Positions 1,088-45,300 of a stretch of 64,000 bases of DNA are shown in pieces (position 1 is the stretch's first letter; each line of letters begins with the position of its first letter). This DNA is from Adineta vaga (lineage: Eukaryota > Animalia > Rotifera): the NCBI GenBank assembly GCA_021613535.1, contig CP075495.1, forward strand, positions 6,634,001 through 6,698,000, in the 5' to 3' direction. The notes under the pieces were generated by a model that saw only the letters and a program-made list of their open reading frames with translations, did no database searches and was not told where the DNA came from. The position numbers were made by a program, and so were the translations under genes.

Positions 1088-2926
1088 AGCAAAGCCGTCG
1101 AGATGATATGGAGTCGCTTGGTTATGTGCTGATGTATTTCAATCGTGGTAGTCTTCCTGTATGAATGAATGATTAAATACATTTTTTCCATCTAATTAAA
1201 ACTATGGTTTCTCTTCTAGTGGCAAGGTTTAAAAGCTGCAACGAAACGACAAAAATACGAACGTATAAGTGAAAAGAAAATGTCAACACCAATTGAAGAA
1301 TTATGTAAAGGATTTCCTGGTAAATAACGTATTTACTCGGTAATTGAAACTGGTCGTTATTTTGTATGTTTTATTTTAGCTGAATTTACTACCTATCTTT
1401 CTTACTGTCGCTCGTTACGTTTTGATGATAAACCAGATTATTCGTATGTTTTAACTGAAAAAATTTTCATTTTAAATTTATTTCCTTTCTTCTATTAGCT
1501 ATTTACGACAATTGTTTCGTAATTTATTTCATCGTCAAGGTTTTACCTATGATTATATTTTCGATTGGAATATGCTCAAATTTGTATGAAATATCATTTA
1601 TTTTGTTTTGTTTTTAGTTAATCATATTATATTCTTATTTTAGAGTGGACAACGATTTGATACGAACAGTGCTAATGAAGGTTCAGCTAATAAACTTGAA
1701 ACAAATGGTTTTTCAGCACCACCACAAGGGCCTCAGCCAATGTATAATAACAATCAAGGTGAGTTCAAATCGATGAAAATATTCTTTTCTTTTTCGAGAA
1801 GACATTTTCTTCTTCATATCTTAAAACTGATATTAAAAGTAAATTTTCCTAATAAGAATAGAAAGTCTCGATATAAATGGTCGACCCACCTTCGGTCCAT
1901 CGTTAAGTATAAATGATGATAATGGATATGTGACTAACAAAAAACTCGATAATGACGATAATGGGCATATGACTAACAACAAAAGTGATGATGATGATGA
2001 TGAAGATGATAAAAAAGTGTACCGTTCATCTTCATATGCTCATGATGCAAGAAAACTTTATAAATCATCATCCAATATCAATGATGTTAGTAAACTTTAC
2101 AAATCACCATCTCATCTTCATGATCGACGCAAACTTCATAAATCATCATCGAATCTCAATGATCATAGTAAAAATTCCAGTTTGGCCTATGAACAATACA
2201 CTAAAACGCCATCCAGTTCCAATGTTTTTAGCCGTCTTATGCATAGTGAGCCGCATGTTCAAATAAACGCAAATACTCATCAACAATAAACAGCTGCTTT
2301 TTTACTATTACATTCTCTTTTTTTCTCTGTCTTACCGCTGCTCTCGTCGCATTGGTTTTTATTCAAGGAATCTAATATTCTCTCTAACTGATCAATAACA
2401 TTTCTGAACTAGATGAATACTTGCACATACATAGATATACAGATATATTTTTGATTTTGAATATATATTTTCTATTTTCTTTAGACTTTAATGAGACTCA
2501 ACCATCATTGATCAAATCCAGAATGAAATAATTATAATTAGAATATTAAAAAAAGATACAGAAAGAGAGAAAAAGAGAGAGAGGTAGTGATATTGAATAT
2601 TTTATGTGTGTAAAAGCTCTCCTTCGATGATACACATCACTTATAGACACACATTACTTACACGCCTTATGCCTTCTTCAATGCTTTTCATTCATTTTCT
2701 ATCTCTTTTCTTTCGATTCGCTTTATTGCTCTTAAATTTGAATTTCTTAAGAAACAACAGTTCGATTAATAATCATGTAATTTATTTGATTTTAGGTGTA
2801 TATCGACGAACTCCTAAAGATGTCAATCAAATACAATTGTCACATTCGGCATCCAATAATTCCAAACAACAACTACCACCCAATGGTACAGATCGGTCAT
2901 CATCAGCACGTGCCACTAAAAAATAA
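1088..2926 (+). CDS. CSNK1D/E: Casein kinase I delta/epsilon, 3' half (5' exons not found in this window); two candidate alternative last exons (1862-2289 and 2796-2926)
   Basis: Exons 1088-1158, 1220-1319, 1380-1443, 1499-1583, 1644-1758 splice to [56 protein letters not shown]...[28 protein letters not shown], the delta/epsilon-type kinase C-lobe. Confidence 0.95.
1912..2172 (+). repeat. Degenerate 39-bp (13-aa) coding tandem repeats in the CK1 proximal last exon
   Basis: [13 protein letters not shown] / [13 protein letters not shown], then [13 protein letters not shown] / [13 protein letters not shown] / [13 protein letters not shown] / [13 protein letters not shown]. Confidence 0.8.
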
Positions 2927-5361
2927 TGACGTGCTTTAGTTTGTCTTTTTTTCTGTATCCTTTCTTTTTCTCTTTTTCTGTGTACAGCGCTTGTTCTACA
3001 TTATTTCTTTCTCTTTCCGCGTTTTTTGTCTCATTTTCTTGAACTTGTCTTTTATAAAAAACAAATGAAACAGAAAACGAAAAAAAACCCACTTCGATCA
3101 TCTTTCGGTAAATTGTATGTTTCTATCAATGAGAACAAAAGGAATTTTTATCCTTGCGTGCGCGCGACGATCTGTGAACAGTGTGTGCATAGTCGATCGC
3201 AGTTCTTCTTTCTCTCTCTTCTATTCATTCGATTGTTTTGACAATCAGCATCGATTTTCTTCCATCAATCATTTTCTTGTGTGAATATAAACGCACACAT
3301 TTTACTTTTTTCTTGTTTTCTTTTCAATTTTTTGCAGGCACACTCACACACTCATTTACATATATATATATATATATACAAATACATTATATTCATCTTT
3401 GTTCTCGAATTTTTCTTCTTTTCGATATCTAATTGTTGTACTGCTGATGCTGATCGTCGTCCTTTCTTTTTTTGTGTCCTTTTCTGTTTCTTTATGTGTG
3501 CAATCGAAGTTACACAAACCAACAAAATATTATTCGTTTCTTTCTTTTTCTTCTCTTTTCTTTTGATTTAAAAGATCACATTCATGATGTCAGAAATAAA
3601 AGAAAACAATATATACATAAATAGAGATTTCTGTTATAGTTCTTATAGATAACAGACAAACTCTTGCATGACAATATCCTATGTCATTGTGTGACACGTT
3701 TTCTAGACAGAATGATATATGACATAAATGCATTGATTTATTCATTAATATCTATTTTTGAGATGAATTGATATAGAATATCATGTTTAAAAAAAACATT
3801 CCTTGTTTAGTAATGAAATAAGAAATCAATTGAAAATGAATTCATATTCTCTAAATGTAAACATATTAATACGAAACCATCGAATCAAGAGTATTTCATA
3901 TATGTATTCAATTAATTGAAGTTTTGTTTAGGAAATTTGTAATAGATATGATATTGTAAATAAAGTTTTTTTCAGTCGCAATTCATCAGCATTACCTTGA
4001 AAAAAGAAACTTGTACATGCATCATGATCAATTTTTTACGTTCTTACCGATTTGTATAGATAGTTTTTACACTTCGTTTGCCGGTATTTTGACTCATGAT
4101 CACACGTCATTAAACGGTTTTTTCATGATCAATTTGTGTGAAATACTAATGTTTGTTATTGTTTTCTCTTCTTATATTCAACGATATAAATATACAACTT
4201 TTTCGGTGAACATTCTTATGTTTTACAATTACATACGTGATTTTGATTATTTTATAAACAAATCATTTCTTTTACATTTTTTTTAAAATGAGTTTTTGGT
4301 ATGGTATTGAACGGTATGTATTGATCACAGTTTGAAATCGAATTATATTTTGTTTATACGCTTCGTTTTTCTGCAGAACATACAATCAATTTCATCGATT
4401 CACACATCAATGGAAAAATCGTCATTTTTCTCAAGCGAATCATTACTATAATCAGTATCACTATCAATACTAACGAATGATTTTTAAAGTGAAAAGAAAT
4501 TTGTTTTTAACAAATGTACACTTCATTACTCGTTTTTACGGAAATAAAGATGTCATGATATGACTTAATGTTACGTTTATTGATATTAAATCATATGTAC
4601 ATACATCAGGCGGCTTTTCAACGTGATTTTGATAAATGTACTCTAAGATACAAGAGATATTTTTATTGTTTTGAAAACAAAATGAGTGATGAAATTTGTG
4701 CCATTTTGACAGATCAATGTATATAGTTTTCATTTAACTTTGATGACATAAGTTGACGAGATTATGATCGTAAAGAAATTGAATGCATAATTAAATAGTA
4801 TTTCTATCATTTTAAGTAAAAAAAACTTCTGTTACATGTCATCAATCAATTTATTATTAGAAGAACGTGAATAGAATATTTGAAAGAAGAGTATTTTGAA
4901 CACGAACTTATATGAACAATATAAAAGGAATCAACTACATGGAAACAAATTGAAGTTGTGATTTAAATGCACACAATACATCAATGAAATACAAAGCAGC
5001 ATCATGTTTATGTATGGTATAAATATATTTAAAAAATGATATTGAGAAAATCAAAAACATTCTTTCTGGAATACTTTGAGATGACTTTCGAATTATTTAT
5101 GAATGTTAGTGTTATTCTTATGGAAAATAACAAAACAAAGAAATATTTGTAGACAGATGAATCATTTTGAAGTTACATATGGATGGATTTACGAACGAAC
5201 TGACTGAAAATGGACGCCACGTGCTAAATGAATAATAGAAAGAGAGAGGAAGAAAACGAATGAAGATGGTAAAGAAATCTGTTCGTTCATACAATCCAGT
5301 TCGAGTGGACAAGACAAGAGCACAACAACGACAAGAATTAAAGCAAAAAAAATAGTTAACA

Positions 5362-23480: not shown

Positions 23481-24224
23481 TAGCTGCCGTTTGTTCTTTC
23501 AAGCTTTCATGTAACATTCTTTATATTTTCGCATTTTTATCTATTTTCACATGCTATTGAAAAAAGTTTCTTCGATCTTTCATGTATTCAAGATTAGTTT
23601 AGAATATGAACCGATACGGATAACAAAAGAAAACCATAGTGAAACTTTCTTATTGATATTAATAAAAGAAACAGTGGAAAACTTTAATGATGGAAATTTT
23701 AAAATACTGTGCCTCGATTTTTCAGCCAGATCAATTGAGAATGTGTGAGTGTGCAATATTTTTCTAATGAAGAGAATGCTTCAATATTGAAATGTTTTCA
23801 AAGAACTTTGTTTGTTCAATTTTTGTATGCGCAAATAGTAAGATGATCATTAGTTTACTAATCATATCTCGACTATCACTAATAAGCATATGGTCATACT
23901 CTAGGTTATCCAATGAAAAGTAGTTTTGAGTATGTTCATTGAAAATCTTCATAAATAATCATGCTACAATTATAAATAACTGCCACTAATGAAAATATGT
24001 TTACTAAACTGTGAAATATACATTTTGACTGAATAGATTCAATTAAGAAAATATCTTTCAAGTATTTTATCAAGAAGAAATTTTCTTCTTAGTCTTTCAT
24101 ATCTATAAATAAAAGAATACGTCAATGTGATCTGTCATTTCTACAATCAAACTTTTGAAGAAACTATCGTTTCCATTGTCACATCTTCTATCAGTATAAT
24201 TTTTCTTTCGAAATAATTCGTGTA

Positions 24225-25357
24225 ATGCAGTGTAAAATATGTGGCAGTGTAGCTAAAGGTTATCATTATGGTGTTTTGACTTGTATGTCGTGCAAAGTTT
24301 TTTTTCAACGACATGTTCTAAATGATATTTATACAATCGAAGTAAACAAAATTTTTCTTTTATTACTAAGTAATTTTCTACTTTAATCATTTAGAAAATA
24401 GTTCTATGTCGTTTTTCGAATGGTTCATGTAAAATCAATGAAAGAACACGAAAAAATTGTATATCATGTCGATTAACTGCCTGTTTGAAAGCTGGTATGT
24501 GTCAACGACGACAAAAGTCATCAAAAACAAAATCCATATTGTCTTTACAAAACTGTCAGGATAATCAATTGCCAACATTGGATTTATTAAATGCTGATCG
24601 TTCATCATTAAATTCTTATCAATGGAATATTATTTCGAATATTACACATAAATATGATCTTTTATTTGAAGAACATAAAATTACTATCACTCAATTTCAT
24701 ATTCAAAATGAACAAAAACCTGTAAAACTTCGTTTAAAATTATCTAATTATACACAGATTGTTACGACTTATTTTACATTTATGGTTGCATTTCTTGAGC
24801 ATATTCCCGAATATCAATTATTCAATTCATCTTAACGTGAAATTCTTATTCATCATAATTTAATAACATTAACTGGATTAAATAGTCATTATTTAGCTAA
24901 TGCTACTGGTTACATTCCATATTTTGATAAAGATTATTCATCGATCGTGGAGATTCTCTATGGTAATGAAACGATTCTGAAAAATGAAAAACTTCGTGAA
25001 CAACTCGATGAAATCTTTCATAATAATCCTATATTAATCAAATTAATTCTTGTAATTTTTGCATTTGAAAACGTAACACCAGCTTTATTATTTTCCAATT
25101 CGCACGAAGATCAATTACAATCATTTTTTCACATGTTACATCAAAGTCAGAATAATTATGTTGATCTCCTATGGCGTTATATGTTATATCGATTTCGACA
25201 TGAAAACATCGTTATACATTTGTTTTCTCATATTATTTATAATTGTTTACGTGTACAAGACTTTTCATATCGAACAGCTGAACAAAATTCTAAACATAAT
25301 ATGATGTATGAAACTTTAATTGATCAATTTGAATCGAAATGTACTATGAATAATTAA
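24225..25357 (+). pseudogene. Divergent nuclear receptor (C4 zinc-finger DBD + LBD) with in-frame TAA at 24833-24835
   Basis: [29 protein letters not shown], intron 24342-24394, CRFSNGSCKINERTRKNCISCRLTACLKAGM; ORFs 24485-24835 and 24947-25357 share one frame separated by a single stop. Confidence 0.75.
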
Positions 25358-26912: not shown

Positions 26913-29900
26913 ATGAAATCGAAAAAACGAGCTGAAATTCGTGATCTACATTCGAACGATGAATGGGATGTTATGCTCAATAAAGATGGTTTAAAATAAG
27001 TTCTTATAAATGAATATTTCATTCTTTCTATTAATGATCGTTTTCTTTCTTTTCTTTTTACAGTTATTGATATTTATCAAGAATGGGCAGGTGCTACTGT
27101 TGTCTTAGAGGATATATTTCTTAAATTGAAACGAACATTAATACATACGGAATATTTAACATTTTATTCTGCTAATTGTGAAAATGTTGATCTGTTGAAA
27201 CGTTATCGTGGTTATTGTGAACCATTGCTATTTTTCTATGGAGTATTTACTATGAAAATTTAATCTGATCAATTGATTTAAAAATATAATATTTTTTAGA
27301 ATAATGTTTTAGTACATATAGAACATCAAGTGAATGTTCCAAATATTGAGAAAGCTATTGAAGAACAATTAAATAAGGAATTGCAAGCAATGAAAGGAAA
27401 TCAAAAGCGTGAAGCAGTAAAATTGTTTTTAGAAATAAATTAAATAAAGATTGTCGATAATGAGATAGTTAAATGAATTATTATTAACGAAATATGCTGA
27501 ATATAATGGTACTCAACAAACAACACGTTCAAGTATTAAAGGATCAGTATCAAATGACCCAATGTGTAAATGATTGAATGATATGTATTTAAGAGACTCT
27601 ATTTAGTTTTACTATTTTATATAGTATACAAAGACGAATCATCAAGTTTACGAAGTTTATTATTGAAAACAGCAGAGAAAATCGATCAAGATTATTGGCT
27701 TAGTTCAGGTATCTTTGCTCTTATCATTGTCATCGATTTAACATGTCGATTCATTTTAGAACCGTATAGAATAGGTGTAGCACTTTTTGTTATAAAACCT
27801 GATCTACTTGCTAGTGGAAAAAAAGATGAAATTCTTGATCAGGTAGATAAAATCAAAGTGACAAATGTATTTCTCGAACGTTTTGAAACTTTTCTTTAGT
27901 TACGTCAAAGAGGATTTGTTATTCATACCCAGGCTGATAAATTACTAGATAACGAAGATATGATGAAAATCTTCCAACCAGTATTATTTGACTTTGACTA
28001 AATATTATTTTCCATGAACTATTTCTTTTTCAAAGGATCAAGACATTATCAAAGAATTCAATCGATTTATGTCGAGTGGTCCAAGTGCTTATGTAGTCGT
28101 ATCGAAAGGTTTCACAGGACGATCAACATCTGATGATCTTCGATCTATCATTGGTTATCATGATCCGGATATTGCAAAAACAAATCATTCTGAATCATTA
28201 ACTGCTATCTATGGAACAGATTCCATTATGAATGGATTTTATTCAAGTGCCAACAATCAAGAAGCACTAAAGTTGTCATTTCTATCATACATAACAAAGA
28301 TTTGATTGACAAGAATATTGATTAATAGGGATATTCAAATTGTTTTTCCAGATTATCAATATCCTTTAATTGACGGCAAATCTACTGATGAATACGTTCA
28401 TAAAACAGCGACATTATGTCTTCTTGGACCTATACAAGTACAGACAAAGAAAGGTATGCTCGAAAAATCTTTGTTTAAAATATAACTTTTGATTGATTTC
28501 AAAATAAAGATGCTATCATACAAGCAATAGTTAAACGTGGATTTGAAATACGTTATAAAAGAATGTATCTATTTCGACCGGATGAAGTTGAATCATTGTA
28601 TATTAAACATCGTAATGAAGAGTTTTTCAAAACATTAATTGATGCTTATACTGCGTGAGAAATAATTGAACACGAAACGATTTATCTATGTGTTCTTTAT
28701 ATTGTTAGTGGACCATGTTTATTACTTTATGTCGCCAAAGAGAATTGTGTATCAGATTTTAATGAATTTCTAGGACCATTTTCTCGTGAAGAATTTAGTC
28801 AAATACCTGGAACGTATGTTATTAGTCTGTTTATTATAATTGCATATAGATGTTCATCTTTTCTAGACTTCGACACGATTTCGATGAACCTTCAACACCC
28901 GTGGTAATGAAAAGTTTCGCATCATCTCAATAAAAACTTTCGAATTCAGACGACAATTCATGGTTCGGAAAGTATTATCGATGCACGAAAAGAACTTGAA
29001 CAATTCTTTTCATATCAACAAACACTAACTATTATCAAACCAGGTTTAACAATGAATCAAAAAGGTATTCATTATAAAACAAAAAAAGAATATTTCTTTC
29101 GCATATCGATCTATGTATCCTAGATGATATTGTTAGACGATTGAAATCCAATGGTTTTACAATTACGGCAAAAGAAACAAGACATTTAACAAAAGATATT
29201 CTGACACAATTCTATGCTCGACATCAAGGTTTACCATGGTTTAATGATTTTATTCAATTTATGAGCAGGTGGAGAAAAAAAATTGCTTTCATTTATATTG
29301 TATCGATATTTGATATGCTAGTGATACATGTGAGATATTAATACTCGCACGAGAAAATGCTGGTAAATGAACTTCTGTAAACAAAAATATGATTTATGAA
29401 GTTACTTGGAAAGACAGAAAGAAATTTGAAATTCTCATCATTTTTTAGTACAAGCTTTACGTGAAATAATGGGTCCGGTCGATCCTGTACGTGCCAAAAC
29501 TGATGCACCAGATTCGTATGTCTTTGATAAATGATAAACGTGAACTTTTACTCTTTTTTGTCTATTATTAATTGAAGAATTCGAGCAATCTATGGTTTAG
29601 ATATTATGCGAAATGGCTTACACGCATCATCAAATAAGAAACATGCTCGAGAAGAAATTCGTCTACTTTTTCCCGATTATATTTTTCTTAAAACTAAACC
29701 AATACCTTTTCATTCCAATGTTTCGTCTAGTTCAGTTCGATAATTTAGTTTTACGATTTTTTAATGATGATATACTTTTAGTTGACGCAACAGTTTTGAC
29801 TAATTTAACAATATCTGGTGAAAATGATTTGTATCATCTTGAATCACATGGTATGAAATTTTTCAAATGTCATAAAGAATGAATTTTGCTTATACATTTG

Positions 29901-32509
29901 AAGAAATTGTATATGAATTTTTTGTACATACTCGTTTAAATGAGAGTAAAAATGAAGATTCAGCTGTTTTTATTACATTAATTGGTAAAGATAATGAAAC
30001 AAAGAAATTTCTTCTACAGTTTTCGGATAATACAATTCATCCTTTACAATCGAATAAAATCGATATATTTCATTTTGTTGATCGTGATGTTGGTATTGTA
30101 AGTAATGAAATACAATGAAAATAAATCACAGAAAGTAGTAACTGGATTGTAGCCGAAAAATATTCGATTGTCACATGATGGACGAGGTTTTCCAAAGAAC
30201 TGGATTTTAGGAGATGTTGAAATAACAATGACGAATAGAAATAAAACCTACAGGTGACGTCATCTATTGTTATCATCGTTCTAAATCGAATAATATCAAT
30301 GTAGATTTGATATCAACGAATTGATCGATGAAGAAAATACAAAGTTGAATTATCCTCTGACAAATACCAAAGGTAAACTGACCGATATCGCAACACACCC
30401 TCAAGATTTTACTCTATTCATAGATTTTGAACCTATGAATAAAGGCAATTGTGTCATTATTATACAAACAGGCAGTGCTAAATATGCGAATACATTCGCT
30501 GATTGCAGGTAGAATCTTTATTTGCATATTTTCAAATAAACAAATTTTTTCATAGCATTCTTCTCTCGGGTTCTAAAGGTGTCTATGCCTTTTCTCTTCA
30601 TCAATCACTAACTAATCGTTTACCGTTTCAAAATCGTTATCGTGATATATTCCTTGTGGAAGTTGATGAACACTTAAAACAAATTGAATATATTGTTCTT
30701 GAACATAATAATGAAAATTCTTCACCTGCATGGTTTGTTGATTTTGTTATGATTAAATTATTGAATAACCAACAAGAATATTTGTATATATATATCATTG
30801 TAAACAAATGATCATTAGAATTGAATCAAATTTTTCTTTCTAGCTTTCCTGTCTATCGATGGCTTTCAATCGATTATCTTGATGGAAAAACGAAGATTAC
30901 ATTAGCAACAGATAATCAAAATATATCCTACAATGAAAGTTCGATAATCAATCATTCATAATAATTAAATATTGTTTTTGCTTTTCGTTCAATAGATCTT
31001 TTAGAAGATCGATCGAATCGTAAGTGTATACATCAATTTACAGGCTAATTCATTTTTTTGTAGTTATTCGATATGAAATTCATCTTGTAACTGGTTCGAT
31101 GTTTGATGCCGCAACCAATTGTCCAGTTTGGTTGACGATCAATGGTACAAGAGGATCGATTATTAATAAATATTTGGAAATAGCAGAAAATGAATCATAT
31201 CCATTTGAACCAGCAAATGATGATCTATTTATTTTATATGACGTCGATATTGGAGAAGTGTGTGAAAATAAAGCAACGAATGATCGTTGATGATTTGTTT
31301 GTAGATAGATAAAATGATCTTAGGTCATGAAAGTATTTCTGCGGAACAAGGATGGTTTGTTCAATCAATATCAATACATATACCATCGAAACAATTTCAT
31401 AGTGAAAAGTGAGCTAGAATAAATTGAAAATGAATATCTAGAATCTCTTTTTTGTCTAGATTTAAGATTAATAAATGGTTGAATTCAAAACGGATCGATG
31501 CTATACCATTAATTGAAGTTCAAGTACGAAAACCAATCAAATGTAAGATGATAAAAGAATCTAAATTTTGATTACATAGTTCAAATCAATAGCATATCTA
31601 TTCTATTCGAAAGATAATTGAAGAATGTCATTTTCTATCATTTTCTTATAGTACGTCGAAACATAAAAAATCAACGTACAGTTGTACCACAAGTAGTTTC
31701 TAACGCCACGCTTGTGTCAATTCATGAATATGGTACTGTCGCATTGATTTTCGTTCAACTCTTCATCAATAAATGTTACTCATATCTTGATTTAGAATCA
31801 TCATATACAATCTATATATTGACAGAAAATTTTCAGTCTGACATGAATAAACTAAATATTTTCATTGATTTAATTATGGATGAAACACTCTCAACTGGTT
31901 ATATGCGATTGAAATGTGATTTGCCAATTCGTGATAATATAGAAAACAATGTTTTATGTAAAGTTCAAGCATTTGGAAAAAGAATCGATAGAGTAAGAGA
32001 TGTTTTCATATTGTCCTATATTGATTCAATAAATTCTTATCGTTCAGATCAATGCAATACGTTTACTTATTCGTAAGTTAAGAGCAAATGTTAGTACAAT
32101 AGTTAATTTATTATGTATGTAGGTACACCTGATCAGAGAACATATTGGTTTCCTCGTTTTATTCTTATTACAGTCGATGAAACGGAAGAAATCTTTCAGT
32201 GAGTAATAGTTTGATAAATGCATATGTTTTCTATTTTACGATGAATATTTGCTAAGATTTCATAATTCCAAATGGCTTCATTATGCAAATAGTAATAGTT
32301 TCGGAGCAATTACTATTTATTTAAAAGTAGTTTCTCTCGAGTCTGTAAATCAAGATTCGAAAAAATTCATTCAATCATCATCCGATAACATTGAACAGAA
32401 GAAAAATCATCAAATTGAAAATCAATTAGGTTGGATAAAACAATCCTATACCAAAGAAACAGGAAATACTGTGATTGATAAACACTTGACGAAACAAAAC
32501 AAAGACTGA
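26913..32509 (+). CDS. NME8/TXNDC3-like protein (thioredoxin-like + 3 NDP-kinase domains) apparently fused to about 4 PLAT/LH2 domains
   Basis: Trx-like VIDIYQEWAGAT...RYRGYCEPLLFFYG; NDK motifs LFVIKPD, FMSSGP, TIHGS, TLTIIKPG, MGPVDP, RAIYGLDIMRNGLHAS; PLAT motifs VFITLIG, IRLSHDGRG, EHNNENSSPAWFVDFV, FPVYRWLS, YEIHLVTGSMFDAAT. Confidence 0.85.
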
Positions 32510-33286: not shown

Positions 33287-36200
33287 ATGTTTCTTCCACC
33301 CATTGGTCAACCACCAATCTCATCATCAATTCACGGCAATGAAAGTATCAATGGAACAAATATGATTAATACAAGTACTAGTTCATCAGGTTCATCAACA
33401 TCAAATGCAATGGGTCTTCCACCTCCACCTCATATGACATCGATGCCATCGACACCTCCTGGAAGTGGCATCATGACAATGCTTAATCCTCCACTTGATT
33501 TATCACCACCACCACGACCAGATTTCGGTCGTGAAGGTCGTTCAATAAAATTACGTGCAAATCATTTCTCCATTCGAATCCCTCCAATACTTATTCAACA
33601 TTATGATCTTAATATTCAACCAGATAAATGTCCAAAACGCGTCAATCGTGAAATTATTGATACAATGGTTAATAAATTTCAAAATATATTTAATACTCAA
33701 CATCCAGCATTTGATGGTAAAAGAAATCTCTACACAAAAGATCCATTACCATTTGGTCGAGATCGTATTGAACTTGAAGTCACTTTACCTGGTCCTGGAG
33801 AAGGACGTGATCGATGTTTTAAAGTACAAATTAAATGGGTCGCACAAGTTAGTTTAGTGAGCTTACAAGAAGCTTTACAAGGACATGGACCACCTGTACC
33901 AAATGAAGCTGTTTCAGCACTTGACGTTATTATGAGACATTTACCGAGTATGAAGTAAGTATTTGTTTGAGAATCAATTATTTCAACTATTGCTTCCTAT
34001 TTCATACTCTACAGAACTCATAGGTAATAAGTTTTCGAGCTTTTCCATTGACATTGAAAGACAAAATCTGTTTATATGCAACGAGAAATCTGCACATCAC
34101 ATTGATTTGAATTCTATTTAGATATACACCTGTTGGTCGTTCATTTTTTTCACCACCAGATGTTCAATACAATCCATTGGGTGGTGGTCGTGAAGTATGG
34201 TTTGGTTTTCATCAATCTGTTCGACCATCCTATTGGCGAATGTCATTAAATATCGATGGTATATAATTTTTTACTAAAAATGACTTTTTTTAGTCTAAAA
34301 TTCATCTTTGTTTCTTTAGTTAGTGCTACAGCTTTTTATAAATCACAGCCTGTAATTGATTTTATGTGCGAAGTACTCGATATTCGAGATATACAAGAAC
34401 AACGACGACCATTGAATGACGCACAACGAGTTAAATTCACAAAAGAAATCAAAGGTTTGACAATCAAATATTGAGAAAGAGTATCACACTTATATAGGAT
34501 ATGTAACGAATGATTTTCTCGCATAGTAGAACGTTAAAATAGATATAGTTATTATTTGAACAGATCGATAATAATAAGTGACTTTAAATACAAGGGAAGA
34601 AACGTTTCTATTGTTGAATGTTTACTTACGTTCGTATTAAATATTTTATCTTTTAATTAGGTCTTAAAATCGAAATAACACATTGTGGTAACATGAAACG
34701 TAAATATCGTGTTTGTAATGTCACTCGAAAACCTGCTCAATATCAAACGTAAGTTGAATAAATTCACTTTTGGATATGCGACTATTTTATTTTTATTCGT
34801 TTATCTGTTCAGTTTTCCTCTTCAACTTGAAAGTGGTCAAACAGTTGAATGTACTGTTGCAAAATATTTCTACGAAAAACATCATATGAAATTACAATAT
34901 CCTCATTTACCATGTTTACAAGTTGGTCAAGAACAGAAACATACTTATCTTCCACTTGAAGTAAGAATTTTCTCATGAAAATTATTCTTTTCTCTATAAA
35001 ATAAACTTTGTCTAGGTTTGTAACATTGTTCCCGGACAACGATGTATTAAAAAATTAACTGATATGCAAACATCGACAATGATTAAAGTATGTATTTGAT
35101 TCATTCATCAGTATTCCCTTTTTACAGATTTTTGTATCGCGAATTTATTAATATATATATATATATGTATAATATATTTTTGTAGTGGAGTGAGGTAGAG
35201 TGTTATTTATTCATATCGAATAAGCATGATTCTTTTCTTTGGAATGAACTTCTGAATACATAAATTTAATTCAATTCACATTGAGATCGTTCCTATCTAT
35301 ATGTTATTGTAGAGTCAACCCGATTCACCTCAGGTAAAACTAAAATCAATAAATAAACTCAACTTCTTACACATATATGCACTGTCTTTCTTCGCGTGCG
35401 CGAAATAGACGTCTGTTTTTATTTCTTTTTTGTCTAAGTAATGAAATTATTTGAGCACATGCGTAAATATAACCGCTGTTTTTCGTTTTGTTTGGGATGA
35501 ACTTTAAAAAGAAACGATCTTGTCCTAATTGGTCAAAATGTTTGAATGACAATAACAAAGATAGGAACGATTGATGTTAATGAAAATTTGATAATGAGAC
35601 TTGCGAAAAATTTAACAAACAATCAGCACGACTCTTTTCATCTTCTTTGTTATGTAAAATTTATTCATTTTCTTATCCATTAAACTTATAATAATGTTTT
35701 GGAACAACATATATTTATGTCTATTTTTAGGCAACTGCACGTTCAGCACCCGATCGAGAAAAAGAAATCAATAATTTGGTAAGTTTTATATTGATATAAT
35801 GACAAAGAATATCTTGTTGATGAATGGCATATTTTAGGTGCGCAAAGCGGAATTTAATAATGATGTTTATATAACTCATTTTGGAATTAATATTTTAACA
35901 AATATGACCGAAGTCATGGGTCGTGTATTAAATGCACCAAAAATTCAATATGGTGGTCGTGTAAGTCATAATCAATTGTATCTTTTATTGGATCATTTTC
36001 TATTTTCATCTTTTAGACTAAAGTCATTGTTACACCTAATCAAGGTGTTTGGGATATGCGTGGTAAACAATTTCATACGGGTATTGAAATTCGTACCTGG
36101 GCTATTGCATGTTTTGCACCTCAACGTAATTGTAATGAAGCTGCACTTCGAACATTTACTCAACAATTACAACGAATATCAAATGATGCTGGTATGCCTA

Positions 36201-38170
36201 TTGTTGGTCAACCGTGTTTTTGCAAATATGCAACTGGTATTGAACAAGTTGAACCGATGTTTAAATTTCTTAAAACATCATATAATGGTTTACAATTAAT
36301 TGTTGTGGTTTTACCTGGTAAAACACCTGTTTATGCTGAAGTCAAACGTGTTGGTGATACTTTAATTGGATTGGCTACACAATGTGTTCAAGCAAAAAAT
36401 GTTAATAAAACAACACCACAAACTTTATCAAATTTATGTTTGAAAATTAATGTTAAATTAGGTGGTGTCAATAATATTCTTGTGCCAAGTGCTCGACCTA
36501 TAAGTGTGTTTCGTGAACCGGTTATTTTTATTGGTGCTGATGTCACACATCCACCAGCCGGTGATCGATCAAAACCATCAATTGCTGCTGTAAGTTGTCT
36601 TTTTCGAAAAAAGAATTCTTGTTTCAGAATTAGTTTGATTTTTTTCATAAAAATTTAATAGGTTGTTGGATCAATGGATGCACATCCATCAAGATATGCA
36701 GCTACTGTTCGTATACAAATGCATCGTCATGAAGTTATTGCTGAATTATCAACTATGGTTCGAGAATTACTTATACAATTTTATAAATCAACACGTTTTA
36801 AACCAGCACGAATTATTCTCTATCGTGATGGTGTTAGTGAAGGTCAATTTGCTCATGTACTTGCACATGAATTAATGGCTGTACGTGAAGCATGTGTTCG
36901 ACTTGAAGCATCTTATCAACCGGGTATCACATTTATTGTCGTACAAAAACGTCATCATACACGTCTCTTTTGTGCTGATAAGAAAGAGCAGGTAATTTGA
37001 TAATATCAAAAACTTAGATGATCAAATCAATCAATATTGATAATTTTGAGCAGAGTTTAAAGTAGGGTTTAATATTTACAAGAACATCAAGATCTTATGG
37101 ATTTGATAGACACATTAAGACGTGGGCAATTCCTTTTCTTTAACTATACTAGTATCTTGGTATATGTATTCATATTCCATGAGAGATGAATTTTTGAATT
37201 TCACCAGTTTCTTTGCAAAACAACTCGTCAATTATCTAAGTAGAAAGAGAACATCTGTAAAATACCGGTAACTTGTAACACCACTAAATCTCTATAGAAT
37301 AAAGACATAAACAAGAAATTGTCATGAAAGTTGTTGTTTTGTTATTGTCAAACTGAATAGAAATTATGTAAACTGAGGTCACATGACATTAAATTTTCAT
37401 TTGTACGTGTCGAACATTGTCTGGTTTGAATTAACTTTTCAGGATAGATTGACATTATAAGCATATTAACTAGAAGTATTAATTAATTTCACCTGGAAAA
37501 TTATATGCGTCCTGACCTTTCATGATCAGTGGCTATGTTTAATATGTCGTTACCTTTTTACTTGATAATATTGTTTTTATAATGTCATCGTGTACAGTTG
37601 AAACTAATCGATGATTGTTTTTCATAGAACTCATGAATCAGTTCATTAATAGGTTATAAAATAAAATTTCTTTTAATTTAGTGTGGTAAAAGTGGTAATA
37701 TTCCACCTGGTACTACTGTTGATGTGGCTATAACACATCCAACAGAATATGATTTCTATTTATGTTCTCATGCTGGTATACAAGGTACATCTCGACCATC
37801 ACATTATCATGTTTTATGGGATGATAATCATTTTTCTGCTGATGAATTACAAGCATTAACATATCAATTATGTCATACATATGTACGATGTACACGTTCA
37901 GTATCTATACCAGCGCCAGCTTATTATGCTCATCTTGTTGCATTTCGTGCACGATATCATTTAATTGAAAGAGAACCTGAAAGGTAAATATTTTGATTGG
38001 AAATAATACTTATTACATATTCAATATTTGCTTTTTCTTTTCTCTTTAATTTTAGTAATGAAGGTTCACATCAATCATCCAATGGTGATTCTAATGGTCA
38101 ACAACAAATTCAATTGAGTCGTGCTGTTACTGTACATCCTGATTCGGCTCAAGTCATGTATTTTGCTTAA
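33287..38170 (+). CDS. AGO1: Argonaute, AGO (miRNA) clade, N-PAZ-MID-PIWI with intact DEDH tetrad; 12 constitutive coding exons plus a 5'-UTR intron near 33120-33183
   Basis: [97 protein letters not shown]-terminal VMYFA*. Confidence 0.98.
34015..34023 (+). other. Candidate 9-nt microexon in Argonaute (PSMK-THR-YTP)
   Basis: ttcctatttcatactctacag|AACTCATAG|gtaata; upstream intron would be 60 nt; frame preserved, no stop. Confidence 0.6.
35186..35194 (+). other. Candidate 9-nt microexon in Argonaute (WSE)
   Basis: atatttttgtag|TGGAGTGAG|gtagag, phase 0/0. Confidence 0.5.
35313..35333 (+). other. Candidate 21-nt microexon in Argonaute (SQPDSPQ)
   Basis: gttattgtag|AGTCAACCCGATTCACCTCAG|gtaaaa, phase 0/0, GC-rich island in an AT-rich intron. 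Confidence 0.6.
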
Positions 38171-42349: not shown

Positions 42350-45300
42350 ATGACGGAAAGTCTAATGATTTGTAAACCAGATAGTGAAGATGAACTGACA
42401 AAAGTGCCAACTGCTGGATCATCATCATCTCGATCTAGTACTCCAACTAGTACATCGAAAAATAAAAGAGCACGATTAACCTTTCCATTTGGTGCATGGT
42501 AAATATTAGACTTCTTTTTCTTTTTTGCAAAAAAAAACAACAAATGCTTTCACAAATAATTTATGTGTTCGTTTTTCTTTTGATGAATTTTTAGTCGTGT
42601 ATGCTCAGATTCAGCAACTGGTATTCATTATGGAATTGCTACATGTGAAGGATGTAAAGTAAGTACTAATCATCGATAAACATTTAGCGAAAAACATCGC
42701 AATCATTCAGTTTCGTACCTTTTCCTTTTTGATTTCAATACAATCAAAGAAGTCAGACGATAGAGATTATTTTTGAATGATTCTTTTTGTATTGAAATTT
42801 CTTATAGTTTTCTTCTTTGAAAGTAATATATTTATTCTTATTTTAAGGGTTTCTTCAAACGAAGTATTCTTCGTAAAGAAAAATATCGATGCTATTTTGA
42901 CAATTCATGTCTGATTAACGTGAGTAATCGTAATCGATGTAAAGCTTGTCGATTTCGACGATGTATCAGCGAAGGCATGTCTGTTGATGGTACGATATTT
43001 GATGGTTTTTATTTTAAGAATATGTCTGTATTTGCTGTTTTTAGGTGTAAAAATGGGCCGAATACCAAAAATAGTTAAAGAAAGAGCACTACGCGAACAA
43101 AAAGAACAACAAATGAGACAAGAAGCACTTTTAATAGAAACCAATGAACGGCCAGATGAAGTTCATGCAAGAGAATCCTCATGTTCATCATTATCGGATC
43201 GTAGTATTGAAAATTACGATCCAAATCTAATGGAAATAGGTAAAGAAAAAAGCCTGATTATTTTTGTTATTATTCTTTGTCGGCAGGAAAGAAAAAAAAA
43301 CTATATTCATCGAGAAGAACGTCGTAAAAGACGACGAAAGAAAAGAGAATGTACCGAAAAAGAAGGGGAGTACTCGTGACTTCTCTTAATCGAGTTTCTC
43401 CATTATATATTCTTTGCAACTTTCTCGGTCAAGAGTAACGTCGGGTTTATTTTACATAAAGAAAAGATAAATACTATTTTTGCGCGAATAGTCTTTTTTG
43501 TTGTTGCTAAAACATGAATTAATCATTTGAGAGAATGTTCTCAATTGATGACTGATGATTCTACAGGAAATTATGTGGGTTTACTACGTAAAGTGTTGGA
43601 ATGTTAAATACAGAAAATGACGCCCGCTGAGGTTGATAGAGTATCATAATGAAATATTTTCCTCCATATGTTTTATACGTAGAGCTGTTAATTAACTTAA
43701 AAAAAGGTTATAAATAATAAATATAGATATTTAGACGTCTAGGACTTTTATCACTCGGAACAAACAATAAAACAATCATCAAGCTATTACTATTTATAAA
43801 CTATAAGCCTCTTATGTTGTAGACTCCTTGTAAAAGTTTTCTAATAGTTGTGTGCATGTATTAAGAAGCGAAAAGTATCAAATTAACATTTTTTTACTAG
43901 ATTAGCCTCACCAAGTTATAATGTCGCATCTGGCGGCACAGTACTTTATATAGTAAATTCACACTATTTCTAGAAGAATTTGTAGTGCTAATATTATTGA
44001 TAGGACAACAGCTAAAAGGCATTTCTTGTAATAAAAAAATATTATTTTTAAACAAAGTTCTTCTTGAATAAATTTCGAATAATATTTATTTAATGTATTA
44101 GGTTCACCTGTTCGACGACATCATGATGAACCCACAAAAATAGCTGCTAACCATATTCAACCATTCAATAATCAGCGAATAAAACGTTTACAAAAAATAT
44201 CTGAACATGATATTAATTCCTCATCTGTATTTCATAATCAATCAAAAAATGCAACAATAATCTATCAAACGAAATATCCAACATTTCTTCCACATGATTT
44301 TACATTAGATGAAACTATTGGATTAACCGAACATTCTACAAGTCCTTTATCATATGATGTATTTCAACACGTTATAACTGTATCAAATAAATTAAGTCAG
44401 AATAAAGCACACTTATTGGTTCAATTAGATGAAGATGAATTAACATTTATCAGGTAAAGATATTGTTTTCATTAGAGAAATTGAATTGATTTTCTTTTCT
44501 ATTGATCTTAGATTTCTTCGTTGGTCATCATATAATATTTTTGGACGATATTCCAAACGAGTTAAACAGTTAGAACTACGAATGAGTCATATGATTCAGG
44601 ATGGTATCAATGAATTTCCTGGTGATAATGGTACAAACGAAGAATTCTTTCAAGTTCTTCAAAGTTAGTTGACAAAGAACGACTTTTAGTTTCATTGACA
44701 TAGAAGTATTTTCTTTTTCTGTTTAATAGAAAGTCTCGCAGTTATTACTCGAAGCAATGTTTTTTACGCTCAAGAGGTATGTAAAGAAATTTCAAGGGAT
44801 TTTTCTAATCTGTTCTATTTTAGCTTCCTGGTATGAAAAATATCGATTCAAACGTTCTACAAAAACTACTTTTACGTCGATCATTTGATTGGTTTATTGT
44901 AAGGATTACTAAACACAAAATGTCGCTTAAATTCATCAGTTTTTTTTTATTTCAATTCTAGCTCAAATATAGTTCTTTATTGAATAAAAATGGTCAATTC
45001 TATTTTGTTTCATCGGATGGATTTCAATTTAGTCGTCAATGGATGAATTTATTCTACGGCATAGAAATGACAGATGCAATCTTTGAATTCAGTCAATGTT
45101 TACATGAATTGCATCTCGAAGAAACCGAACTTGCTCTTATTATACCTTTACAAATGTTACATTCAGGTTAGTATTCTTTATTAAGGTTCATGCTTTTTCT
45201 TTCTAATTAAAAAAACGTTTTTTTCGTCTATAGATTCAAGTATGCAAAATGAAGAAATCTTACGGATGTTACGTGCTTGTTATTTATATGCACTCTACGA

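Follow-up and report, generated by a model that had tools for sequence, protein, structure and literature searches.

Alternative microexons of animals are frame-preserving cassettes of 3–27 nucleotides (nt), which are flanked by conserved introns, are often neural and depend on SRRM4/eMIC or RBFOX. The looping-out of an exon by long-range pairing of intronic RNA is an established principle of regulated splicing. In Argonaute proteins, helix-7 is the element that allows targets to be scanned fast through the seed. Here we describe an Argonaute gene of the bdelloid rotifer Adineta vaga, located in a 64,000-nt stretch of DNA (GenBank assembly GCA_021613535.1, contig CP075495.1, forward-strand positions 6,634,001 to 6,698,000; hereafter the window), in which one long intron holds two tiny cassettes, m1 (9 nt) and m2 (21 nt). 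The evidence favors the reading that m1 and m2 are two genuine and ancient frame-preserving microexons that insert into helix-7, are regulated, and are skipped in most transcripts; we regard this as probable.

The two cassettes share with animal microexons their size, a length that is a multiple of three, canonical splice sites, conserved flanks and a GCAUG just downstream of the 9-nt exon, as well as the insertion into a part of the protein surface that is structured and critical for function. They differ in four respects. No UGC of the SRRM4 type adjoins the 3' splice site of either cassette in the window sequence, the host intron is lineage-specific, the case is known from sequence and one m2-bearing gene model, and the 21-nt exon is guarded by a predicted long-range RNA duplex, not only by protein-binding motifs. 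With exon looping-out, the locus shares conserved complementary boxes flanking the alternative exon, one of which overlaps the 3' splice site region. In the bdelloid case, these boxes are without covariation, and we infer the repressive direction from geometry and predominant skipping.

The gene was modeled in the window, which belongs to A. vaga contig 2, by a six-frame scan with splice sites placed by hand. The features of the gene and of the intron in question are as follows (aa, amino acids; ORF, open reading frame; miRNA, microRNA).

33287–38170, + strand: miRNA-class Argonaute gene, 12 coding exons, all introns GT-AG, stop-free ORF of 912 aa
33287–33954, 34122–34258, 34320–34454, 34661–34748, 34813–34960, 35016–35087, + strand: Argonaute coding exons 1–6
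35731–35778, 35838–35960, 36017–36589, 36662–36991, 37682–37983, 38056–38170, + strand: Argonaute coding exons 7–12
35016–35087, + strand: exon 6, its last residue the equivalent of human AGO2 R366
35088–35730, + strand: intron 6, 643 nt, phase 0, within the helix-7 coding sequence
35186–35194, + strand: cassette m1, 9 nt, TGGAGTGAG, encoding WSE, with ttttgtag before and gtagag after
35313–35333, + strand: cassette m2, 21 nt, AGTCAACCCGATTCACCTCAG, encoding SQPDSPQ, with ttattgtag before and gtaaaa after
35731–35778, + strand: exon 7, its first residue the equivalent of human AGO2 A367

The nearest named proteins are those of Adineta steineri and Rotaria species. A bdelloid protein of the same length as the window model (P0247, 912 aa) showed the Pfam domains ArgoN, L1, PAZ, L2, Mid and Piwi (PF16486, PF08699, PF02170, PF16488, PF16487 and PF02171). 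Over residues 351–457, the stretch matching window exons 5–8, it was 97% identical to a bdelloid complementary DNA (cDNA) contig, L041. This cDNA region aligned with human AGO2 320–425 over 106 residues without a gap (E = 2e-47), covering PAZ-L2 including helix-7. Judged by domain architecture and identity to AGO1–4, the window gene is a miRNA-class Argonaute (AGO1/AGO2-like, eIF2C).

Exon 6 ends in ...QTSTMIK (ATG ATT AAA, to 35087), followed by gtatgt, and exon 7 opens with GCAACTGCA at 35731, reading ATARSAPDR. The intron between them is 643 nt long, versus 55–72 nt for most introns of the gene. RNA evidence was taken from assembled Logan contigs of A. vaga studies, a type of contig that drops minor isoforms; the junctions from 34454 to 36662 were backed by these contigs, all GT..AG. 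A preliminary description, made from the window sequence, had reported an intron that splits QTSTMIK|ATARSAPDR and contains two phase-0 cassettes, WSE and SQPDSPQ. The split is exactly as claimed, the 12-exon model and the RNA contigs being in agreement, and the cassettes proved correct in coordinates, frames and splice sites.

Both cassettes are in phase 0, stop-free and bounded by AG/GT, so that additions of 3, 7 or 10 aa are possible in frame. In size (at most 27–30 nt), in being a multiple of three and in their canonical AG/GT boundaries, they correspond to microexons. The AG...GT motif alone is at chance level, because YAG-N9-GTR occurred 62 times in the window versus 54.6 expected from shuffles. 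The chance expectation for YAG-N9-GTR, a single length, is ~0.3 per 643-nt intron strand, and 1–3 frame-compatible cassettes would be expected by chance per intron of this size when all in-frame lengths ≤27 nt are counted. The frequency of the bare motif would suit an explanation in which m1 and m2 have no function and are AG...GT pairs that arose by chance in AT-rich intron sequence. This explanation is effectively refuted and retains a negligible probability, as the intron is unalignable outside the blocks, which are nearly the same in the two ohnologs and in two bdelloid families. The cassettes rise above chance because they are conserved in the ohnolog and in other bdelloids. Recursive splicing, through a recursive splice site or exon, was rejected because neither cassette begins with GT (m1 starts with TGG and m2 with AGT), so no GT would be regenerated at the junction.

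In the six-scaffold haploid assembly of A. vaga, chromosomes 1, 2 and 3 are homoeologous to 4, 5 and 6 (PMC8494291). The ohnolog of the window gene, on contig 5, has coding exons 83–92% identical to those of the window copy; the introns of the two copies align at 45–57%, which is what forcing AT-rich DNA into an alignment would be expected to give. When the two copies were scanned for conserved islands, intron 6 had four, introns 1 and 10 had a single weak island apiece, and the eight remaining introns lacked any. The first island comprises m1 with both splice sites (20/21 identical, TGC for TGG), the second is a 26-nt block with GCATG, the third spans 41 nt with the polypyrimidine tract, the AG and the beginning of m2, and the fourth is a 25-nt block at 35546–35570 (24/25 identical). 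At the same places and with the same splice sites, the ohnolog carries an m1 of sequence TGCAGTGAG (CSE) and a 21-nt m2 encoding NQQELLQ.

Loci beyond A. vaga were found via exon-9 ORF fragments (metagenome and genome contigs) and cluster members (named NCBI assemblies). Both cassettes are also present, at identical boundaries and in the same frame, in ~20 further bdelloid loci from A. steineri, three Rotaria species and metagenome contigs, and outside the conserved blocks intron 6 does not align between loci. Homologous gene copies lacking the cassettes had been named in the preliminary description as the observation that would speak against them; instead, both cassettes are present in the ohnolog and across bdelloid species. 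Exon and flanking intron are conserved between species and paralogs with the frame preserved, as expected of microexons.

Wherever m1 is present, including >10 metagenome loci, it is 9 nt long with AG/GT. It is identical to the window copy in A. steineri, R. sordida and most metagenome loci, and reads TGT-AGT-GAG in R. socialis (CSE, the Cys being encoded by another codon than the TGC of A. vaga contig 5), TCG-AGT-GAG in R. magnacalcarata (SSE) and TGG-AGT-GGG in locus L027 (WSG). None of the variants WSE, CSE, SSE and WSG contains a stop codon. In ~20 loci, m2 measures 21 nt and is stop-free and in frame, and a single locus (L024, NPQDLLVQ) has 24 nt; this sole length change (+3 nt) preserves the frame, although indels abound in the flanking intron. 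The m2 peptides SQPDSPQ, SQQDSPQ and SQQDSRQ group with the window contig-2 copy, and NQQELLQ, SQQELLQ, SQQELVQ and SQQELPQ with the contig-5 copy, with the pattern S/N-Q-Q/P-D/E-x-x-Q kept. Synonymous codon swaps (CCC/CCA, CAA/CAG, CTA/CTG/TTA and CCT/CCA) occur within these groups: SQPDSPQ is written with CCC in A. vaga and CCA in A. steineri and L027, and SQQELPQ is encoded with CTG-CCT, CTA-CCT or TTA-CCA. In three metagenome contigs (L028, L031 and L032, ~1218–4209), exons 1–5 and 8–11 are fused into two long ORFs; introns 5, 6 and 7 are kept despite the fusions, and intron 6 carries m1 and GCATG. Intron 6 of this fused-exon Argonaute copy is without m2.

The cassettes exist with canonical splice sites, and both ohnologs, as well as two bdelloid families, have kept their place, length class and frame. 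The genome duplication is reported to be older than the split of the bdelloid families (Hur et al. 2009, listed in PMC7943196). Because both ohnologs carry both cassettes and the duplication predates this split, the cassette system is old.

Conservation of this kind could also be explained by intronic RNA elements that never enter messenger RNA (mRNA), such as pseudo-exons or decoy splice sites, U1 sites or a structural duplex. Such blocks would aid the removal of an intron ~10x the usual bdelloid length, and the fit to the reading frame would be incidental. In line with this explanation, the nucleotide conservation of m1 and its flanks exceeds what a 3-codon peptide would require, and two tandem motifs resembling 5' splice sites (GTGAGG and GTAGAG) are found at m1. 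It is at odds with cassette lengths that are always a multiple of three, with a sole indel of +3 and no stops in ~20 loci, and with an m2 that varies yet keeps its peptide pattern, partly through synonymous swaps. Furthermore, intron 10 is as long (690 nt) without comparable islands. Considering also the duplex and the transcripts described below, we judge the intronic-element explanation unlikely, though it is the main rival.

Apart from the cassettes, intron 6 contains the following conserved elements.

35221–35246, + strand: conserved block downstream of m1, with GCATG at 35224–35228
35284–35312, + strand: upstream arm of the predicted duplex, spanning the m2 polypyrimidine tract and 3' splice site
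35391–35404, + strand: conserved near-palindrome of high GC content, TTCGCGTGCGCGAA, downstream of m2
35449–35502, + strand: conserved intronic blocks ATTTGAGCACATGCG..ATAACCGCTG and TTTGGGATGAA
35546–35572, + strand: downstream arm of the predicted duplex, ATGACAATAACAAAGATAGGAACGAT
35624–35636, + strand: conserved intronic block CAGCACGACTCTT

A GCAUG downstream of an exon is the classic arrangement of an Rbfox enhancer. Every inspected locus with m1 had a GCATG 20–45 nt downstream of the cassette, and the loci without m1 (L036-40 and L024) lacked the motif. A Pfam search of the genome for Fox-1_C gave no match, but its controls gave none either.

The block at 35546–35572 matches, as its reverse complement, a stretch that runs from ~28 nt upstream of m2 to the end of the m2 3' splice site. 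An exact 11-mer and its reverse complement co-occurred in 10/10 m2-bearing loci aligned, as well as in most others; the upstream arm was imperfect in L023 and in L024, the locus with the 24-nt m2. RNAalifold predicted an interrupted helix of 23 pairs (~22 bp), with pairs kept in 9–10/10 sequences, and folding of the A. vaga RNA put the duplex in the minimum-energy structure (z = -3.3). The case for the duplex rests on the mutual complementarity of two ultra-conserved intronic islands. Its geometry loops m2 out and buries the 3' splice site, which fits skipping by default. The initial bases of m2 belong to the predicted duplex, a point in favor of purely intronic elements. The near-palindrome TTCGCGTGCGCGAA and a later block (..GAGCACATGCG.., 35449–35478) were conserved in all m2-bearing loci and may pair together.

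An inverted repeat of ~22 nt with a spacing of ~250 nt might also mean that intron 6 contains the relic of an inverted-repeat transposon or a gene for a non-coding RNA such as a box C/D small nucleolar RNA, and that the conservation belongs to that element. Rfam indeed returned a C/D match at 35540–35588 (19 bits, E = 0.57). However, the best Rfam matches scored 19 and 17 bits versus gathering scores of 48 and 60, which is chance level, and a whole-genome DNA search with the region returned only the locus and its ohnolog, with no repeat family. An origin from a miniature inverted-repeat transposable element was rejected, being unsupported because the genome holds no other copies. A hosted element would, moreover, leave the AG/GT boundaries, the frame and a gene model that includes m2 unexplained, and we consider it improbable.

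Under the favored reading, the microexons insert into helix-7. In the alignment to human AGO2, M, I and K correspond to positions 364, 365 and 366, which places the insertion point between R366 and A367, and the bdelloid helix-7 sequence equals that of human AGO2 except for N359M and R366K. Helix-7 of AGO2 comprises residues 359–369, and I365 intercalates between guide bases g6 and g7 (PMC7670403). The structural placement in the preliminary description, which had assigned the insertion to helix-7, is right, because the ungapped alignment sets these three residues inside these limits. The AGO2 substitutions T357M, M364T and A367P are pathogenic, cause a neurodevelopmental disorder and alter target recognition (PMC7670403). 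The bdelloid insertion concerns the same structural element and adjoins positions whose substitution alters target recognition. The human changes are engineered or pathogenic point substitutions, whereas the bdelloid change would be a natural, splice-controlled insertion of 3–10 residues. The two-Pro peptide with an SP site, which the preliminary description had emphasized in m2, is not a conserved feature; the corresponding peptide is SQQDSRQ in R. magnacalcarata and NQQELLQ, SQQELPQ or SQQELVQ in the other ohnolog clade. A phospho-switch is therefore unlikely as a conserved function of m2.

Several observations weigh against the interpretation of m1 and m2 as microexons. Three A. vaga studies each yielded one 943-nt contig in which 35087 is joined straight to 35731, with zero depth in the intron. 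The cDNA L041, a full-length contig from a bdelloid metatranscriptome, skips both cassettes, as do ten of 11 full-length annotated bdelloid models (40 of 150 cluster members examined). Cassette inclusion was seen in none of the four independent transcript sources, namely the contigs of the three A. vaga studies and L041. In a rough hand count, m2 substitutions were ~5 synonymous and ~8 non-synonymous, not clearly off neutral. Both cassettes have been lost in places, m1 in L036-40 and L024, and m2 in L018/19 and L028. The pairs of the duplex are all invariant. Two AlphaFold runs on P0366, the sole natural insert-bearing protein (441 aa, truncated), with 40 and 119 aligned sequences, gave a mean predicted local distance difference test (pLDDT) score of 48 and values <50 over residues 389–441, which is uninformative on the insert.

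The default mRNA skips both cassettes. This skipped junction, the only one in the transcript contigs and cDNA, is what purely intronic elements would produce. Because such contigs drop minor isoforms, contigs showing only skipping are not evidence of absence. Since the m2 substitution count is near neutral, the coding signal rests on frame, length and stop avoidance, not on the ratio of non-synonymous to synonymous rates. The invariance of all pairs means that the duplex has no support from covariation. In one run (X5), the transcript contigs broke at exon 6 (window 34962) and resumed 3 letters before exon 7 (35731). The loose contig end reads CCT instead of the CCC of the window, which could be strain variation or a graph branch produced by alternative splicing.

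Inclusion of m2 was found in one gene model. CAF4057214.1 of R. magnacalcarata (P0366) reads TMIK-SQQDSRQ-ATARS; m1 inclusion was in no gene model among the 40 of 150 cluster members examined. The R. magnacalcarata models were made by BRAKER 2.1.2 with STAR-aligned RNA sequencing reads of the same species (PMC7943196). The 21-nt exon in P0366 hints at spliced-read support without proving it, and an m2-bearing model made with these reads speaks against elements confined to the intron. Two R. sordida models of the same data set, P0367 and P0364, are identical apart from three extra residues, AYR, where exons 1 and 2 meet, which indicates that 9-nt exons are being called in this gene. The AYR insert sits at the same junction as another 9-nt cassette of the window in intron 1 (34015–34023, AG|AACTCATAG|GT), which would add THR at ...LPSMK|YTPVG. 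The Argonaute gene may hold several microexons. A further R. magnacalcarata model (P0361) has a 21-aa insert at the exon 9/10 junction that looks like a 60–70-nt intron read through in frame.

Outside bdelloids, TMIK-ATARS lay in a single exon in every animal inspected, covering >70 genomic ORF fragments (vertebrates, arthropods and others) and annotated isoforms, and likewise within one exon in three non-bdelloid metagenome or Logan loci. Short protein fragments were searched with a natural exon 6-7-8 fusion from an unrelated animal (L020); TMIK-ATARS was uninterrupted in all 78 fragments read, out of 120 listed, and no bdelloid transcript fragment with an insert was among these 78. Within this sampling of sequences, an intron at this helix-7 position has so far been found only in bdelloids.

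The closest resemblance in an Argonaute is provided by annotated isoforms of molluscs and nemerteans (Aplysia, Babylonia, Physella and Lineus), which share tiny in-frame optional inserts in a miRNA-class AGO. Their variable sites are EIKG|LK, equivalent to the exon 3/4 junction here, a site after GGR, and a mutually exclusive equivalent of exon 8; TMIK|ATARS is uninterrupted in all of them, and none varies at helix-7. The inserts are RW and VFS at EIKG|LK and TAPQ after GGR (P0245, P0253, P0257, P0300-P0304, P0310, P0312, P0328 and P0333). Two alternative exon-8 equivalents occur in this series, both in tandem in one Physella model. No natural isoform altering Argonaute helix-7 was found in the literature searched or in the aligned isoforms of other animals.

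The surroundings of the gene include nuclear-receptor zinc-finger genes on both sides (window ~24150–24400 and 42580–43080) and a PLAT-domain gene upstream (window 26913–32509). Rotaria shares these neighbors, with PLAT upstream in L107 and R. sordida models (P0248) that fuse Argonaute with a zf-C4 protein. In the contig-5 ohnolog (L012), intron 7 is 375 nt versus 59 nt in the window copy, and intron 10 is ~1012 nt versus 690 nt.

If m1 and m2 are microexons, their inclusion would be regulated and minor in whole-animal RNA. m1 would probably be promoted by an Rbfox-like factor acting on the conserved GCAUG 30 nt downstream. m2 would be held off by the conserved ~22-bp duplex, in which the polypyrimidine tract and 3' splice site are predicted to pair with the element ~250 nt downstream; the duplex would loop m2 out, and m2 could be included only if the duplex were opened or outrun. 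Splicing in m1, m2 or both would place 3, 7 or 10 additional residues after the equivalent of R366 and before that of A367, one residue past the I365 wedge. From its position, such an insert should lengthen or kink helix-7 and may alter the presentation of the guide seed and the speed at which targets are bound and released.

We suggest, tentatively, that bdelloids may remodel helix-7 of their main miRNA Argonaute by splicing in particular cells or states, producing variants of the RNA-induced silencing complex with other seed kinetics or stringency, and that this has been kept since before the genome duplication. If this is true, the choice of an exon would switch the targeting rules of the whole miRNA repertoire. 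The locus also offers a small and testable example of a microexon that a long-range RNA duplex would guard. If the cassettes are translated, they would represent an insertion experiment already run by evolution and kept very long, offering natural variants that relate the length and rigidity of helix-7 to seed rules, and miRNA targeting in these animals would be tunable by splicing at the level of the effector protein.

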